The position numbers and the translations under genes are program-made. Below are positions 6,625-35,282 of a stretch of DNA of 35,788 bases, piece by piece. Numbering within the stretch: the first letter of the stretch is position 1; each line of letters starts with the position of its first letter. The notes beneath the pieces are model-generated. The model ran no database searches. It was given only the letters and a program-made list of their open reading frames with translations, and had not been told where the DNA came from. Source of the DNA: Polymyxa betae A26-41 (Eukaryota > Protista > Endomyxa: Phytomyxea); contig RBZT01000739.1 in NCBI GenBank assembly GCA_003693705.1, forward strand, positions 1 to 35,788, read 5' to 3'.

Positions 6625-9330
6625 ATGGAGAATCCAGACAACTGGGTTGAACGCAGCGAAGACCTGATTCCTTTAACAGGTATTGCGAATCCTTTAACTT
6701 TTTCCCTGGAAGCGAAAGGACACCCATCCGCTTACACAAAGTTGAGCCCCATGACCCCATAACCCCATGAGACTCCATCTGATACCAGGGAACGGCCTCC
6801 TCCCAGTCAATTGCTAATGTATTCTAACAGGTCCGCATCCCTTCAATGCAGAACCACCCATCGATCAGCTCTTTGATAGCGGGTTTGTGACCCCAACGCC
6901 TCTTCATTACGTCAGGAACCATGGCCCAGTCCCGCGCCTCGATTGGGAAACGCATCAGATCCGGATCAGCGGCCAGGTGCGTGAGCCGATCACGCTCTCC
7001 ATGAACGACCTGACGAACAAGTTCACTTCTATCGAAAGGATGGTGACAATTGTCTGCGATGGGAACCGAAGAAAGGAAGTCAACGTGATCAAACGATCGA
7101 AAGGATTCAATTGGGGACCCGGTGCTATTTCCACAGCTCTCTGGAGAGGTAACAAGGTTTTGGTGTTGGTAGAAAGCTGACAAAGCTTGCGAAGTCAGCG
7201 ATGTTTCTGAACTTTGAAACCCTTGTTTTTATTTGAATTGAATTTCCTTTGTCATTTGACCAATGTTTCCTCGTTTTGATATGCTCAAATTGTGCAGAAG
7301 GACCGTGTAAGAATGATTTGCTAAATTTGATCATTATTGCAGGAGTGCTTGTGAAGGACATCTTAGATTACGCAGGAGGCGCTGATGACGAAGCCAGATA
7401 TGTCTGGTTTACAAGCTGCGATGAGCTCCATCATGAGCCATATGGGACTTGTATTCCCTCCGGTCGTGTCCAAGATGTGGAAAGCGACGTCATGCTGGCC
7501 TACGAGATGAACGGAGAACGGCTCACGCCGGATCACGGCTACCCTGTCCGCTTGATCGTCCCGGGATATATCGGTGGCCGAATGGTGAAGTGGCTCAGCG
7601 AGATCCATGTCTCGGTAGACTTGACATCAAACTGGCATCATTACTATGATAATCGTTTCATGCCACCCTATATTGATTCTGACGAGAAAGCCGAGGCTGG
7701 CGGATTCTGGAAAGACGAGCGGTTTACGCTCTACCAGCTCAACATCAATTCGGTTATCGTAAAGCCGGGCGCGGGCGAAGTGATTGAGCTCGTGGATATT
7801 ATGAAGCTCACTTATGACATCTCCGGTTATGCCTACACCGGCGACGGCCGCCGCATTCAAAGCATCGAGATCTCGCTGAATTCTGGCAAGACCTGGGACT
7901 CGGCTGACATTCATTATCCGGCCGGGGTCGCCCCCGCGATGGGTACGACCACTGTTCCGCATTGCTGGATGTGGTGCCATTGGACCAAGACAGTGCCAAT
8001 CTGGCGTTTGATTGGCCCCGGCGAGATCCTGGTACGGGCTTGGGACGAATCATTCAATACGCAACCGAAAACAATTACCTGGAATCTTCTCGGGATGATG
8101 AATAACTCGTGGTATCGGGTCAAGATCCACACCGAGACCGCACCGTCGCCGCATCTTGTATTCCAGCATCCTGTACGACCCGGGAAGCTAACAGGAGGGT
8201 GGATGGAACCGCCCACGCCTATCCAAATGTCGCAAACAGTGTGTCCGGATAGGAAGGTGGCCTGGGACGAAGTTCGTCATCATAATACGGCTGATTCACT
8301 TTGGATTGTGATTCATGGTCGCGTCTACGATGTTACCAGTTTTATGGATGAACATCCAGGTGGCGCCAGTCCTTTATTGATGCACGCTGCACAAGACGCT
8401 ACTGCATTGTTCGAAGAAATTCACGACGACTTAGCGAAACAGCAAGCGCAGACATTCTGCATTGGGAGCGTTCGTCCAGAATCGCAACGCCGTCATGTTT
8501 CAAGTCGGCCGAAGCAGCCGAACGTCGATGTTCTTGGTCGACCTATCGGATTATCTACGCGACACTGGGTCAAGGTTGTTATCACAGAAGTTGCGGCAGA
8601 ATCCCGAGATACGATCCGGTTCACTTTGTCTTTCGAAGTCAACAGTTTGCGAATGGCGTTGCCTTGGGGAAAACATATCTTGCTTGGAATGCCCCAGGAG
8701 GACTCAGAAGAAATCTTGATGCGTCCTTATACACCGATACGTCCGGTTACTGTTCAGGAAGACGATAGCTCCTTGACCTTGGTCATTAAAATCTATGAGA
8801 AAGGGCGTTTCACACAAAAATTGAAATGCTTGAAGATAGGTGACGATTTGCTGATGAAAGGTCCAGATGGCCATATTCTCTACGAAGGTCAAGGAAAATT
8901 CGATATTTCAGGACACTTTCTGTCAGCAAAGTGCTTGTCATTGCTTGCTGCAGGGACTGGCATTACTCCGATTTACCAGCTGACCAGAGCCGTGTTATCG
9001 GACCCGGAAGACAAAATTAAGATTAAGATTGTCTTTTCTAACAAGACGATTGGTGATATTCTTTTGAGAAAGGAGCTTGATGAAATCGCTGAGCGACACT
9101 CGGATCGAATTCAGGTCTATTATACGGTATCGGACATGAACAAAGAAGACGTTCTTGACTGGCCGTACGGCATCACCCGCATCACTTACGAGATGCTTGA
9201 ACAGCATTGTTTTGAACCACATCCAGATTCGATCGCCTTCGTATGCGGGCCGCAAGGTTTCGTAGATGCCGCAGCTGTTCCCTTCCTGGAACAACTTGGA
9301 TACGACGACGATCACTATTTCTTGTTTTAA
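6625..9330 (+). CDS. NIA: Eukaryotic NAD(P)H nitrate reductase (Moco, dimerisation, cytochrome b5, FAD and NAD(P)H domains)
   Basis: N-terminal DNWVERSEDLIPLTGPHPFNAEPP, LHYVRNHGPVP, Moco cysteine in VCDGNRRKE..GFNWG, DHGYPVRLIVPGYIGGRMVKWL, WNLLGMMNNSWY, heme b5 HPGG...H, RPYTP, AAGTGITP and CGP. Two introns (~6680-6830 and 7149-7342). Confidence 0.93.
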
Positions 9331-9917
9331 AATTGTATCTTACCGTTTATAAATTGACTAAGAACTGGAAGATAAAAACTGGTGAAATAATCAATGAGAC
9401 CCTTGAGAGCTTGCTATTCTTCCTTAACTGCAAATATCTTGCTGTATCACCTAGATTTTGGAATGCGTCTGTTAGCATCACAGCAAAGAACCAGGAAGAG
9501 CTTATACCCGTGTCTGTTCCAGTATCAATCAGAATCGTGCTGCAAGGTGAAACCTCTGGCACATGTTATACATGCAAACGGTTTTGCCTGCTTTTGCCAG
9601 AACGTCAATCGGAGAGTTCCTGATATGAGACGTTTTACAGAAAGAGCCAAGAAGCAGTAACCGTCAACTCGACGATCGGGCAAGTCGGCAATGCTATCCG
9701 CAGGTCACCTGCGAGCCTGGGTCGCGACTCGCGAACACGAACAACATCTGACAGTTTCCTGATGCGCAAGGCTTGGTAGACGCCTTCTCCGATTAGACAA
9801 ACCTGATGATACTACGACCATTGATTCTGTTTACAAGCTTGTTGATCGTCGCTTAAATGATACCGTAACCTTTTTATAAGTTGATTAAGAATCCTATTAA
9901 GTATTTTAACGTCCTGA

Positions 9918-10557
9918 TCAGATATGATGGTGTCCGTGATCCCCATGATCCTCATGACCATCGTCGAAATCGTGGTCCCTGCATTTACATGTCATTAGCC
10001 GCAGCAAATTTTTCATCAACGGCCGCAATTACACAGAATCATCCTCTTCTGCCTCTTCCGAGTCGCTATCGAAATGCTCGTGGCTATGATGTTCAACTAA
10101 GTGGTTTATCGAATGAGCCTGCATTGTTCCGGTCAGCAACTTTGGAAAAATCAGGATGGAAGTTGTGACGTACATGATTCTCTGAGTGTGAATCTGTGCC
10201 CGTTACTTGAGCTGATATTGTGGCGGTCGTGGTGACCTTCACCTTGTCTTTTCCAATTCCCTATAAGTGAGCTTAGTAATGAATGCTGTCAATTGACCAA
10301 TATTGGTCTCTTCGACCTCTTTTGTGTGTTGACCACTGTCATGGTGAAGTTCGTGTTCTGCAATGAAAATGAGTTCGGAAGAAACGATATTGCAGCGGCA
10401 AACGACCTTCTTCCTCGTCGTTGTCTTCGTGGTCCACGAGATTATCGCCACCGTGGCCGAATTCGAATTCCGATCCCTTTATAAGGAATAATACTGATGA
10501 TAGTAACCATACGGTCAAATACAGCCTGAATCTGAATATAATAACAGTTCGTGACAT
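9918..10557 (-). CDS. Secreted His/Asp/Glu-rich protein (~141 aa, 5 exons), family member A
   Basis: Exons 10557-10407, 10357-10317, 10260-10174, 10118-10033 and 9978-9918 are joined by four 49-56 nt GT-AG introns into one open frame: hydrophobic signal, then GHGGDNLVDHEDNDEEEEHELHHDSGQHTKEGIGKDKVKVTTTATISAQVTGTDSHSENH...DHGHHHI*. The exact start could be slightly upstream. Confidence 0.8.
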
Positions 10558-10643
10558 TATTGCCAACTGAAGGGCCATCAATTGTTTCCAGCATCAAAAC
10601 CACCAACCTGATTGACACCTTCGATCCGATCACTGCAAATGCA

Positions 10644-10652
10644 ATGACTCAT
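10644..10652. promoter_or_regulatory. AP-1/GCN4-type bZIP site ATGACTCAT upstream of His-rich gene A
   Basis: Perfect 9-bp consensus ~88 nt upstream of the minus-strand ATG at 10557. The same core recurs upstream of the other two His-rich genes. Confidence 0.55.
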
Positions 10653-10914
10653 ACATCTGCTGCCTCCAGGTTTTTTGCATATCTTTATGCATATCAAGAG
10701 CATTCTTACGTATTGAAACTGATTATTCATATCTAGTATAGCCTACAGTTATTTTATATTTAAGAAATCGTGGTTGGTAGGCGAGTTTCTGGTTAAACTG
10801 GAGCTATGGTTGGATGGGACCAATTTGTCGTCATGACAAATCGGCCAGATATTGGTAGGATCTTCCACAATTCCGAGCCGAAATTCCAGCGTTCCGGCCA
10901 ATGTTTAATAACCG

Positions 10915-11851
10915 ATGTGGTCGGGTGGTGCTCTTATCTTGGCTCTGCTCTTAATCTGCATTCCCGGTTCTGAATCGCAATGTAGCGCTCCAACTAATCA
11001 TTTCGACTGCCAACTGACCCGATGATTCTTTAGTTTCGCCTTACGGGTTCGGGCCTGGGTTTGGAGGAGCATACAACCCGTATTTTTCATGGGCGAACGC
11101 ATTCACACCATACACCCCATATGGCCCTGAAGCGCCAATATCACCAACAATGCCATTTGGGGCACCAGCGACAACATTTGGTGCACCAACATTTGGTGCA
11201 CCGCCTGCAGCATTTGAGTCACAACCAGTTGCTCCAACTGGCCCGAGTGCACCAATGGCTCCGACTTCTGCTCCAACAACCCAATTCGCTAGCGCGCTTG
11301 GCGCCACACAAGGCGGACCTCCCAACACTCAACAACCGACGATCGTCCCTGTGCCTCAGATTTCGGCGGCGCCGACTACCACTCTCCAGATACTGCCTGT
11401 GCCAGTTCCGATGGCGACACAAGCTCCGGTGACATTGCTAGCCAGCGCTTTAGGAGCTACCCAAGCGCCTGTCCAAATCGCTCTCCCTGCCACAACAACT
11501 CCAGTGACTCTGTTAGCAGGGGCCTTATCAGCGACTCAGGGCGCTGGTAATGTGGCTGCGCCTCTAGTCTCTCAGGTATCTTCATTTTTAAATTGTCTTG
11601 CCTTTGCTCAATCGAAGTCTCAGCCTGTAGCCGCGGCGCCGGTGGCACAGGCTCCAGCGACTGTCGTAATGCCAACGTCAGCCCCAGTCTATTACGCTGC
11701 TGCTGCAGCGGCGAATCCAGCTGGCGGGGAAACGGGCCCTGCTCAGGTCCCAATTACTTCCTATTCACCAACGTCGTCGATGCAGCCTATTCCTCTTGCC
11801 TTGATTATCACAGCTAGATCACCAACAGTACAGGTTTTAAGGGCGGCCTAG
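10915..11851 (+). CDS. Secreted Pro/Ala/Thr-rich (mucin/wall-like) protein with Tyr/Gly/Pro/Phe-rich N-terminus
   Basis: Signal MWSGGALILALLLICIPGSES, an intron at ~10982-11033, then SPYGFGPGFGGAYNPYF..., FGAP repeats and three (L)ASALGATQ-like repeats. Probable in-frame intron 11576-11623; 3' end uncertain. Confidence 0.75.
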
Positions 11852-12329
11852 ATGTACAAACCCCAACGCCCTTAGTCCATTTGCTGATAAATTATGATGA
11901 ATAACATCATTTAGCATATCTTGATGACTGCATATCCGATACAACCAATCTTTTGGATCTAAACACAATGCTGAGTTTATAACGGATTTGGATTTTCAAA
12001 CCAGAAGATTATGTCATCCTGCTTAGAACTAATGACTTTCTTTTAGCTTGTTCGAACATCGTCTCCACCAAACCAGAACAGCGCTTAAGTAAGGTATTAG
12101 GTGTAGTTCATGATCTGACTAACACGCGCCATGATCGCTATCGTCGCGAGCAGACCCAGAAAGCATTAAAGCTGTCGGAAAGAGCGCTGCTGATGGATTA
12201 TGTATAAATGTATTGTATGGTCATGGAACCCAAGGGAATCCATAAAGTTATTGGCAAGGCTATGCGCCTGGCATAATCCAGACCGATTCTCCATCCGATT
12301 CTGAGACCCAAAAACCTTTCGAGGTAGCC

Positions 12330-31105: not shown

Positions 31106-31171
31106 TGAGTCATGACTGAACATTTTGAGTCAATCGTTTCAGACACGCTTCGGCTCCCAGCCGATGACTCA
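31106..31171. promoter_or_regulatory. Cluster of three TGA(C/G)TCA (AP-1/GCN4-type) sites upstream of His-rich gene B
   Basis: TGAGTCA at 31106-31112 and 31126-31132, TGACTCA at 31165-31171, a near match TGATTCA at 31094-31100, and TATA-like ATATAA near 31221. Confidence 0.65.
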
Positions 31172-31286: not shown

Positions 31287-31703
31287 ATGAAGACCACTTC
31301 GATCCTCGCCTCGATTGCCCTGCTGTTGGCCGCCCCTGTCCAAATTCAGGCTGGTGATGCCGCTATCGACGTTCTGAACGGTGATGGTCACGTCGATAAC
31401 GTCGCCGACATCCGCGGTCTTCATGGATTTGACGGTCACCATGGCGATCACGATGGCTTCCATGGACACGGACACGATGAACACGGTCACGGCCACGGCC
31501 ACGGCGACCACGGCGACTTCGACCACGGCCACGGCGACCACGGCGACTTCGACCACGGCCACCGCGACTTCGAACACCTCGGCCATGACTTCGAGGACTG
31601 GCAAGATGACGACCACTTCATGGCTCATGGTCACGACGTTCCCCACGGATACGATGGATTTGAGCACATCCAGCACGAAGACGGCCACCACTGGGATCAC
31701 TAA
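31287..31703 (+). CDS. Secreted His/Asp/Gly-rich protein (138 aa, intronless), family member B
   Basis: Signal peptide MKTTSILASIALLLAAPVQIQA; mature part is dominated by H, D, G and F (HGHGDHGDFD repeats) and ends EDGHHWDH*. Confidence 0.88.
   Translation: MKTTSILASIALLLAAPVQIQAGDAAIDVLNGDGHVDNVADIRGLHGFDGHHGDHDGFHGHGHDEHGHGHGHGDHGDFDHGHGDHGDFDHGHRDFEHLGHDFEDWQDDDHFMAHGHDVPHGYDGFEHIQHEDGHHWDH
31494..31562 (+). repeat. 30-nt coding tandem repeat (HGHGDHGDFD)
   Basis: CACGGCCACGGCGACCACGGCGACTTCGAC occurs twice, followed by a partial copy. Confidence 0.85.
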
Positions 31704-34097: not shown

Positions 34098-34106
34098 ATG
34101 AGTCAA
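34098..34106. promoter_or_regulatory. AP-1/GCN4-type site ATGAGTCAA upstream of His-rich gene C
   Basis: TGAGTCA at 34099-34105, ~76 nt upstream of ATG 34181, with a near match TGAATCA ~23 nt further upstream. Confidence 0.55.
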
Positions 34107-34180: not shown

Positions 34181-34810
34181 ATGATAACATTCGTATTCGT
34201 AGCGTTATTAATGGTGTCGTCGGTGGCGCGCGCCGATCACGGCGACCATCACGACGACCATCACGATCTACACCATGTAAATTCATCGACGGTATCGGGG
34301 CGCCGATTTAACATTCCTGACAGGACGACCATGACCATCACCACGAGCATGATCACATTGATCATCATGATCATCATGACGAAGAAGATCACGATCACGA
34401 CGATGAGCATCAGGATCACTCCGGTAAAGACAAATCGACGACGGCGACGACAGCGACCTTGTCGGCGTCGATGACGGCGTCTGATATGCATTGTAAGGCT
34501 GGCCTGCGCCGCTCACTGTTAGCTTCATTTCGCTGATGGGAATTACAGCGGACTCGCACGAGATCGCCCACGAAGATTCTTACGAGCACGAGGACGATCA
34601 TCACGACGATCACGGTATGCTTGGATTCATGACTACAGCGTCGAGCTAAACGTTGACGTAGATCACGAGAATCACCACCACTTTCATGGTGAGGCGCATG
34701 AGGGCCTTGGGCATGGAGGACACGGCCATGGTCATGACGATCACGAGGGGCATCATTTCGGTGAACATTATGAAGGCGGCCATCACCATTGGGGTGGTGA
34801 AGACGGGTAA
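34181..34810 (+). CDS. Secreted His/Asp-rich protein (~159 aa, 4 exons), family member C
   Basis: Signal MITFVFVALLMVSSVARA. Introns 34277-34323, 34493-34548 and 34615-34661 (GT-AG) give DHGDHHDDHH...SGKDKSTTATTATLSASMTASDMHSDSH...EGGHHHWGGEDG*. Confidence 0.88.
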
Positions 34811-35282
34811 GCCTAGGCTAGGGTTTAGGGTTTTACTAACTCAGCGTCTGCGTTTAGCAACCTGATCTCGTTCTTGCTCGAAGGTCATTAATTGCAAACA
34901 GTGTCGCCATTAATTAACCGCCCGGGTAATGATCTCGGCATTCATGAAAACGTTCGTTATAAAACTCCAATACAATGATAACATGTATTCACATGAGAAC
35001 TTATCCAAGCGGCCAATCCGCCGTCTTGATGTTTGTGCCGCCATAGACGAAGGATAGGCTATCCGCGACGATCTCTGCTGTCTATAAGGTCCTATTATGT
35101 ATGGTCGACAAGCACATAGAGGACTTAATGTAATCAAGAGCATCAAACGCGGAAAGCCAGACTGTGGCCAATGGGATCCCAGTGATGGCGCGGCCGTTTC
35201 GGGACCCCGCAATGTCCACGGCGCACTGTTGGGCCTTGATCGCTATCTGGTTATTTCCAACCATCGCCTTCATTCTACCAAT

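Follow-up and report, generated by a model that had tools for sequence, protein, structure and literature searches.

The window, by which we mean the whole 35,788-nucleotide stretch of DNA analysed here, carries two genes 24 kb apart (gene 1 and gene 2) that encode predicted secreted proteins rich in histidine and acidic residues and that have a short core motif in common. Its source, Polymyxa betae, is a plasmodiophorid that parasitises sugar beet roots and transmits rhizomania. The features of the two loci, in the coordinates of the window, are the following.

9918-10557, minus strand: gene 1, five exons encoding a 141-aa secreted His/Asp/Glu-rich protein from start to stop codon (model reproduced, and transcript contigs)
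10407-10557, minus strand: gene 1 exon 1, with the start codon, a hydrophobic signal-peptide-like N-terminus and the first acidic/His arm (translation and hydropathy; junction 10407/10357 in RNA contigs)
10317-10357, minus strand: gene 1 exon 2, 41 nt, with the unusual donor GAG|GTCGAA at its end (junction 10317/10260 in the contigs of runs X1 and X2)
10174-10260, minus strand: gene 1 exon 3, the conserved core, with the motif at 10174-10254 (profile scores)
10033-10118, minus strand: gene 1 exon 4, His/acidic, in which the second half of the family core is kept loosely (junctions in RNA contigs)
9918-9978, minus strand: gene 1 exon 5, the C-terminal His/Asp/Gly arm and the stop codon (translation and transcript contig)
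10645-10651, no strand assigned: TGACTCA site (AP-1/bZIP-like), at -88 from the start codon of gene 1, within the 358-nt spacer between gene 1 and its divergent neighbour
10915-11851, plus strand: divergent neighbour gene, encoding a low-complexity Pro/Ala/Thr-rich protein that is secreted and has a hydrophobic C-terminus (translation and X2 contig)
34099-34105, no strand assigned: TGAGTCA site, at -82 from the start codon of gene 2
34181-34810, plus strand: gene 2, four exons at 34181-34276, 34324-34492, 34549-34614 and 34662-34810 (sequence-only model)
34423-34559, plus strand: core motif of gene 2, at 34423-34492 in exon 2, interrupted by the intron 34493-34548 and resuming at 34549-34559 (profile scores)

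The spliced 141-aa His/acidic protein that an earlier note on this DNA had proposed for 9918-10557 was reproduced, and its four introns are backed by contigs from two studies. When public transcript contigs were aligned to positions 9000-12000 of the window, a contig of 1876 nt from run X2 (100% identical, mean word depth 221) skipped all four introns exactly, at 9979-10032, 10119-10173, 10261-10316 and 10358-10406; each is GT..AG on the minus strand (CT..AC on the plus). The contig from run X1, which belongs to the other study and is 437 nt long and about 97% identical, skips three of the four exactly; at the remaining one, 57 nt are missing and three different letters stand in between. The exon 2 donor, at 10317/10316, is the only one that preserves the frame; an alternative donor at 10298 is more obvious, but it breaks the frame and is unused in the RNA. 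Two raw-read RNA runs of 2026, X10 and X13, yielded no alignments here and bear neither way on the model. Downstream of the stop codon, a transcript contig extends the 3' UTR to at least 9686. Six differences from the window are listed for X1 in gene 1; five are synonymous and the sixth changes Gly134 to Glu, which indicates a coding gene under purifying selection. The difference at 10222, in the motif exon, is one of the synonymous ones. On inspection, the N-terminus is a long hydrophobic stretch with Arg residues, and the mature protein has 18.6% His, no Cys and a pI of 4.66.

The divergent neighbour has two introns, 10982-11033 and 11570-11617, both GT..AG and both seen in the same X2 contig as gene 1. 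This contig runs from minus-strand gene 1 across the 358-nt spacer into the plus-strand neighbour, both in spliced form (10407-11875), and it may have arisen either from overlapping divergent 5' parts or from bridging unspliced RNA or DNA; the presence of both genes on one contig does not show a single transcript. Its mean word depth is roughly tenfold that of the contig of the assimilatory nitrate reductase gene at 7249-9330, a ratio that is a poor measure of expression.

The earlier note had looked to RNA for confirmation of both gene models. Transcript contigs bear out gene 1 at all four introns, and gene 2 stands as a model read from the genomic letters. Its predicted product has 159 aa and is 28% His; the predicted introns are all GT..AG, and their lengths of 47, 56 and 47 nt fall in the size class of seven RNA-verified introns nearby. 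The His-rich frame would be lost if the first intron were read through. By inspection, the N-terminus is hydrophobic with a classic A-x-A site ahead of the first Asp, and the mature protein would contain 31.9% His and no Cys, with a pI of 5.24. Two TTTAGGG-type units lie at 34813-34834, directly after the gene 2 stop codon.

The motifs of the two genes are identical at 15 of 27 positions when compared position by position, and BLASTP with the exon-confined part gives 13 identities in 23 residues at E = 0.004; taken by itself, this pairwise match is suggestive only. We therefore rely on the wider family. Six-frame searches of the genome to which the window belongs (27,085,814 bases in 1001 contigs; the published draft is given as 1,001 contigs, 27,085,946 bp and 45.1% GC, PMC6328671) with the two motif exons returned five further open frames carrying the core, and a profile search added an eighth genome member, L018. 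In the profile search of the genome, gene 1 exon 3 was found at E = 4.8e-11 and gene 2 exon 2 at E = 2.6e-14. These two exons score 39.5 and 35.1 bits, respectively, against a profile built without the window rows, and 38.9 and 33.0 bits against a profile built from database proteins only, with 9.5 bits the best of 2000 shuffles of both motif exons; at the exon level, hmmsearch gives gene 1 exon 4 a weak 0.8 bits against the family profile. The profile scores are decisive: the shared motif is not a product of chance, because both genes belong to a larger family, and the likeness that had been claimed between genes 24 kb apart is thus upheld far above the chance level. The consensus first proposed for it, GKDKx4TTAT[IL]SAxxTxxDxHSxxH, captures a genuine signature and is too narrow for the family at large, which follows roughly G-x3-x5-T-x-A-x-[LIV]-[TS]-A-x-[VMIL]-x-[AG]-x-D-x-H.

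An exhaustive search of 1.84 billion protein cluster representatives with the core profile (E <= 0.001) matched 16 representatives only, and every named one comes from Spongospora or Plasmodiophora. The named matches are S. subterranea A0A0H5RE08, P. brassicae PBTT_08748 and a further P. brassicae protein misnamed TPR38; the remaining matches are unnamed transcript or metagenome contigs. A word-based protein search with the family alignment returned five proteins, all of them already found. Two long tandem-repeat proteins that match the strand only, P0010 and P0013, were rejected as relatives; P0013 has weak Pfam matches to Big_9, Cadherin_5 and He_PIG. The family is so far found only in the Phytomyxea, namely in Polymyxa, Spongospora, Plasmodiophora and a few environmental transcripts.

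No Pfam family was matched by five paralogues and the two motif exons at E values up to 10, no PDB chain was matched in a profile search with the family, and the protein Atlas offered compositional look-alikes only, with scores <= 0.80. The inputs to searches and folding were individual exons and paralogues without introns; the joined translations served to check frame, composition and charge and for one alignment. The literature searched for histidine-rich plasmodiophorid proteins and for the accessions contained nothing describing the domain or the family. The only literature trace of the family is in the supplementary tables of a 2025 secretome study of gall-formers, where PBTT_08748 (pLDDT 44.6) and A0A0H5RE08 (pLDDT 32.7) are both marked as disordered and fall in separate small clusters, 167 and 519, beside P. 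betae gene models, and where family members are listed among candidate effectors as disordered proteins of pLDDT 33-45 (PMC12503489). Those clusters contain the same proteins and list them as secreted, in table rows without domain, motif, family name, promoter element or function, and the three subfamilies described below are left unlinked. Two Spongospora members were not found in the supplementary tables of a sporosorus proteome and an in-planta proteome; this is weak evidence, since proteins poor in Lys and Arg yield few tryptic peptides. The earlier note's view that the motif belongs to no known domain and marks a new family has thus held, with eight genes in this genome and the profile search it had proposed finding the core in both this genome and its relatives in Spongospora and Plasmodiophora. 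Taking the family claims jointly, we regard it as nearly certain that gene 1 and gene 2 are genuine and belong, as paralogues, to an undescribed phytomyxid family.

All eight P. betae genes start with a hydrophobic, signal-peptide-like N-terminus, as judged from their translations. We computed the mature products of seven family members and of one core-less His-rich gene of the window; the proteins of this set are free of Cys, contain 9-32% His, 16-31% Asp+Glu and 5-11% Gly, and have pI values of 4.7-5.6, with a net charge of -16 to -41 at pH 7 and of -5.5 to +12 at pH 5. The core occurs as a single copy per protein and has a fixed length of about 36-45 aa. It consists of a Gly and a Lys/Asp-rich turn, an alternating (amphipathic) stretch of Thr, Ala and aliphatic residues, and a closing Asp-x-His, after which it continues in most members as D-S-Y-S-H-x-H-D-N-A-H-E. 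The motif shared by the two window genes is the N-terminal half of this core; in both, this first half is well preserved, with only a loose fit in the second. In an alignment of 20 cores, a T and an A are invariant, and a G, an A, a D and an H are conserved in at least 90% of the sequences.

Three subfamilies are discernible. Subfamily A has a conserved terminal P-W-[VI]-x-x-G motif; in subfamily B, about 200 residues precede the core, and a conserved amphipathic segment lies at the C-terminus; and subfamily C, which comprises gene 1, gene 2, L003 and L018, is extremely His-rich. In two of the three subfamilies, the core lies 40-60 residues past the signal peptide. Intron positions differ among gene 1, gene 2 and L018, and in five paralogues the core is uninterrupted in one open frame. 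In L018 (G000:C479:118-3228), the core lies at about 1501-1611 of the locus and is preceded by a long His/Asp-rich arm; the frame departs from the family pattern immediately past the strand, and we suspect an intron at that point. Constraint is concentrated in the core. Between the subfamily B protein of P. betae and its Spongospora and Plasmodiophora orthologues, the 36-aa core is 89-92% identical and the remainder 39-41%; the corresponding values for subfamily A are 50-81% and 21-40%. The conservation of the core in parasites of beet, potato and brassicas points to a shared cell-biological rather than a host-specific role.

Besides the core, the eight genes have a promoter element in common. 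TGASTCA sites lie just upstream of gene 1 and gene 2 (see above), and each of the six other paralogues has one to three of them at -51 to -166 from the start codon; in the fetched 3-kb paralogue loci, there is no TGASTCA besides the promoter sites. The window as a whole has eight sites against 6.3 expected, hence no overall enrichment, and five of these eight are at most 181 nt ahead of the start codon of one of three His-rich genes. The eight 170-nt promoters together contain 14 sites, against about 0.2-0.3 expected at the background density of the window. With the element so close to the start codon in all eight genes, joint activation of the set is probable. The third His-rich gene of the window (31287-31703) is an intronless, core-less gene for a His/Asp/Gly-rich protein that is predicted to be secreted and to be 25% His when mature. 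Its TGASTCA sites are at 31106, 31126 and 31165, not more than 181 nt from the start codon, and with these three sites the element reaches beyond the core family. Two subfamily A paralogues, L006 and L008 (G000:C479:12306-14231), are arranged in tandem about 330 nt apart, each with its own TGASTCA group.

AlphaFold2 predicts no fold for these proteins, with a mean pLDDT of 52 for a full paralogue and of 64 for a 75-aa domain alone. In both models, only the core reaches a pLDDT of 70-79, as an extended segment with no intrachain partner, and in the hydropathy profile of gene 1 there is no other non-polar island apart from the signal peptide. A prediction of a four-copy complex of the 75-aa domain scored 0.01, a result that speaks neither for nor against binding.

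We favour, at a probability of roughly 0.45, the reading that these are metal- or pH-responsive proteins of an extracellular matrix or wall in which the core serves as an association module. The His/acidic arms would act as high-capacity, pH-switchable binders of divalent metals, their charge switching between about pH 5 and 7, and the core, as the sole hydrophobic, order-prone island, would pair, as a beta-strand, with other copies of the core or with a common scaffold; arms and core together could then build a metal- or pH-crosslinked extracellular matrix. Candidate sites are the wall or cement of the resting spore or spore ball, the cyst wall and the penetration apparatus. We count the secreted Pro/Ala/Thr-rich, wall-like protein of the neighbour, which is divergently paired with gene 1, in support of this reading. 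Several observations weigh against it. The very high negative charge would suit a soluble polyanion equally well, and the Gly content lies below that of the His/Gly-rich jaw and beak proteins, in which Gly is well above 5-11%. Furthermore, members of the family are among published candidate effectors and are marked there as disordered (PMC12503489). The two Spongospora members missing from the proteome tables count weakly on the same side.

The same composition could instead serve a secreted, zincophore-like scavenger or buffer, whose arms would take up Zn, Ni, Cu or Fe in the host cell and whose core would anchor the metal-laden protein at a surface receptor or transporter of this obligate intracellular parasite. 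The extreme His and Asp+Glu contents (9-32% and 16-31%), the lack of Cys and the signal-peptide-like N-termini would all fit this, as would the conserved Asp/His cluster after the strand. Against it, the proteins resemble neither Pra1/Aspf2-type domains nor any Pfam family, no transporter gene was noted beside the genes in the window, and eight co-regulated paralogues in three architectures exceed the usual need, such that we consider a scavenger possible and, on balance, unlikely. Pra1 itself contains a metalloprotease-like domain that is folded, and a transporter gene partners its own; on the phytomyxid side there is no Pfam match, no matching PDB chain and no partner gene noted in the window. 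What the two have in common is secretion by a host-dependent microbe and His-rich segments, which in these fungal zincophores bind Zn (PMC3386192, PMC12663325).

Of a host-directed effector family, in which disordered His-rich proteins would operate inside the plant cell and the core would be a host-target-binding or translocation element, one would expect a different pattern of variation. Effectors usually diversify, which is the opposite of the conservation of the core, and a core 89-92% identical between genera that live on unrelated hosts (beet, potato and brassicas) argues against such a role, as do the position of the subfamily B core about 200 residues from the N-terminus and the synonymous nature of five of the six listed differences between isolates in gene 1. 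We therefore judge this reading improbable, even though the window is rich in other secreted-protein genes and the effector secretomes predicted for P. brassicae, S. subterranea and P. betae include family members (PMC12503489). Least credible, and in our estimate very improbable, is the notion that the Thr/Ser/Ala stretch is a mere mucin-like O-glycosylated linker or a chance low-complexity likeness. The stretch is indeed rich in Thr, Ser and Ala, and the pairwise BLASTP E value is only 0.004; against this stand the position-specific conservation of T, A, G, D and H in 20 sequences from several genera, the leave-out profile scores of 33-39.5 bits against 9.5 for the best shuffle, and the single copy and fixed length of the core. 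Judged from these sequence comparisons, the chance version is largely refuted. Self-assembly, Lys cross-linking and a wall, adhesive or effector role, which the earlier note had also suggested, are hypothetical functions.

Returning to the favoured reading of a metal- or pH-responsive matrix, one of the closest known systems is the jaw of Nereis. Its protein Nvjp-1 is a His-rich disordered structural protein hardened by metal coordination (PMC9465683). Secretion, His-richness, disorder and a chemistry responsive to pH and metals would be common to both, and for the arms of the phytomyxid proteins we use Nvjp-1 as a working analogy. There is no sequence relationship to Nvjp-1, and the phytomyxid proteins are much more acidic and have a conserved strand-like core. 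For the core, the closest likeness is to bacterial cadherin-/Ig-like repeats (F-strand and FG loop), in which the family profile matches the repeated L-S-A-T-I-I-A-T-D-S-H-D-N-S-Y-S, the same alternating strand closing in Asp-x-His-x-Asp-Ser-Tyr. Only about 20-25 residues match, however, and the core is far shorter than an Ig-like sandwich. Membership in Cadherin_5, Big_9 or He_PIG was rejected, with no Pfam match in five paralogues and the motif exons and no sandwich built by AlphaFold2. A dehydrin/LEA-type hydrophilin was likewise rejected; there is no Pfam match, and the N-termini look like signal peptides.

Among the plasmodiophorids are the agents of clubroot and powdery scab as well as organisms that transmit rhizomania and cereal mosaic viruses, and the group survives for decades in soil as resting spores, the wall proteins of which are, to our knowledge, essentially uncharacterised. 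A lineage-wide, probably co-regulated and so far lineage-only family offers a handle, both as a source of specific antigens and markers and through a promoter element that defines a regulon, and it turns the metal and pH chemistry of spore or infection structures into a testable idea. Even if the proteins prove to be soluble metal scavengers or effectors, their conserved core would point to a recognition module that is new. A more specific proposal, which we regard as distinctly unlikely, is a non-mineral material peculiar to plasmodiophorids and hardened by metal coordination, in which cross-beta arrays of the core would be locked through the His/Asp arms by Zn or Cu and the whole would be switched on by a bZIP factor acting on TGASTCA. 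Candidates for such a material would be the wall cement of the resting spore or spore ball, or the 'Stachel' of the zoospore, the dense body that encysted zoospores fire through the host wall.

In the databases, the P. brassicae orthologue of subfamily B is labelled 'Tetratricopeptide repeat protein 38' (P0008 compared with P0007). One P. brassicae assembly has a 486-aa model in which a TPR38-like N-terminus is joined to the family protein, and it is apparently from this fusion that the 276-aa stand-alone model took its name.

Transcription around gene 1 also has a feature outside the coding exons. An X2 contig over the 3' end of the nitrate reductase gene covers 9000-9448 and then 9506-9637, skipping the 57 nt between (9449-9505). 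The CT..AC ends of the skipped segment identify it as an intron of a minus-strand transcript, which may be either a long 3' UTR of gene 1 that is spliced or an RNA antisense to the 3' end of the reductase gene.
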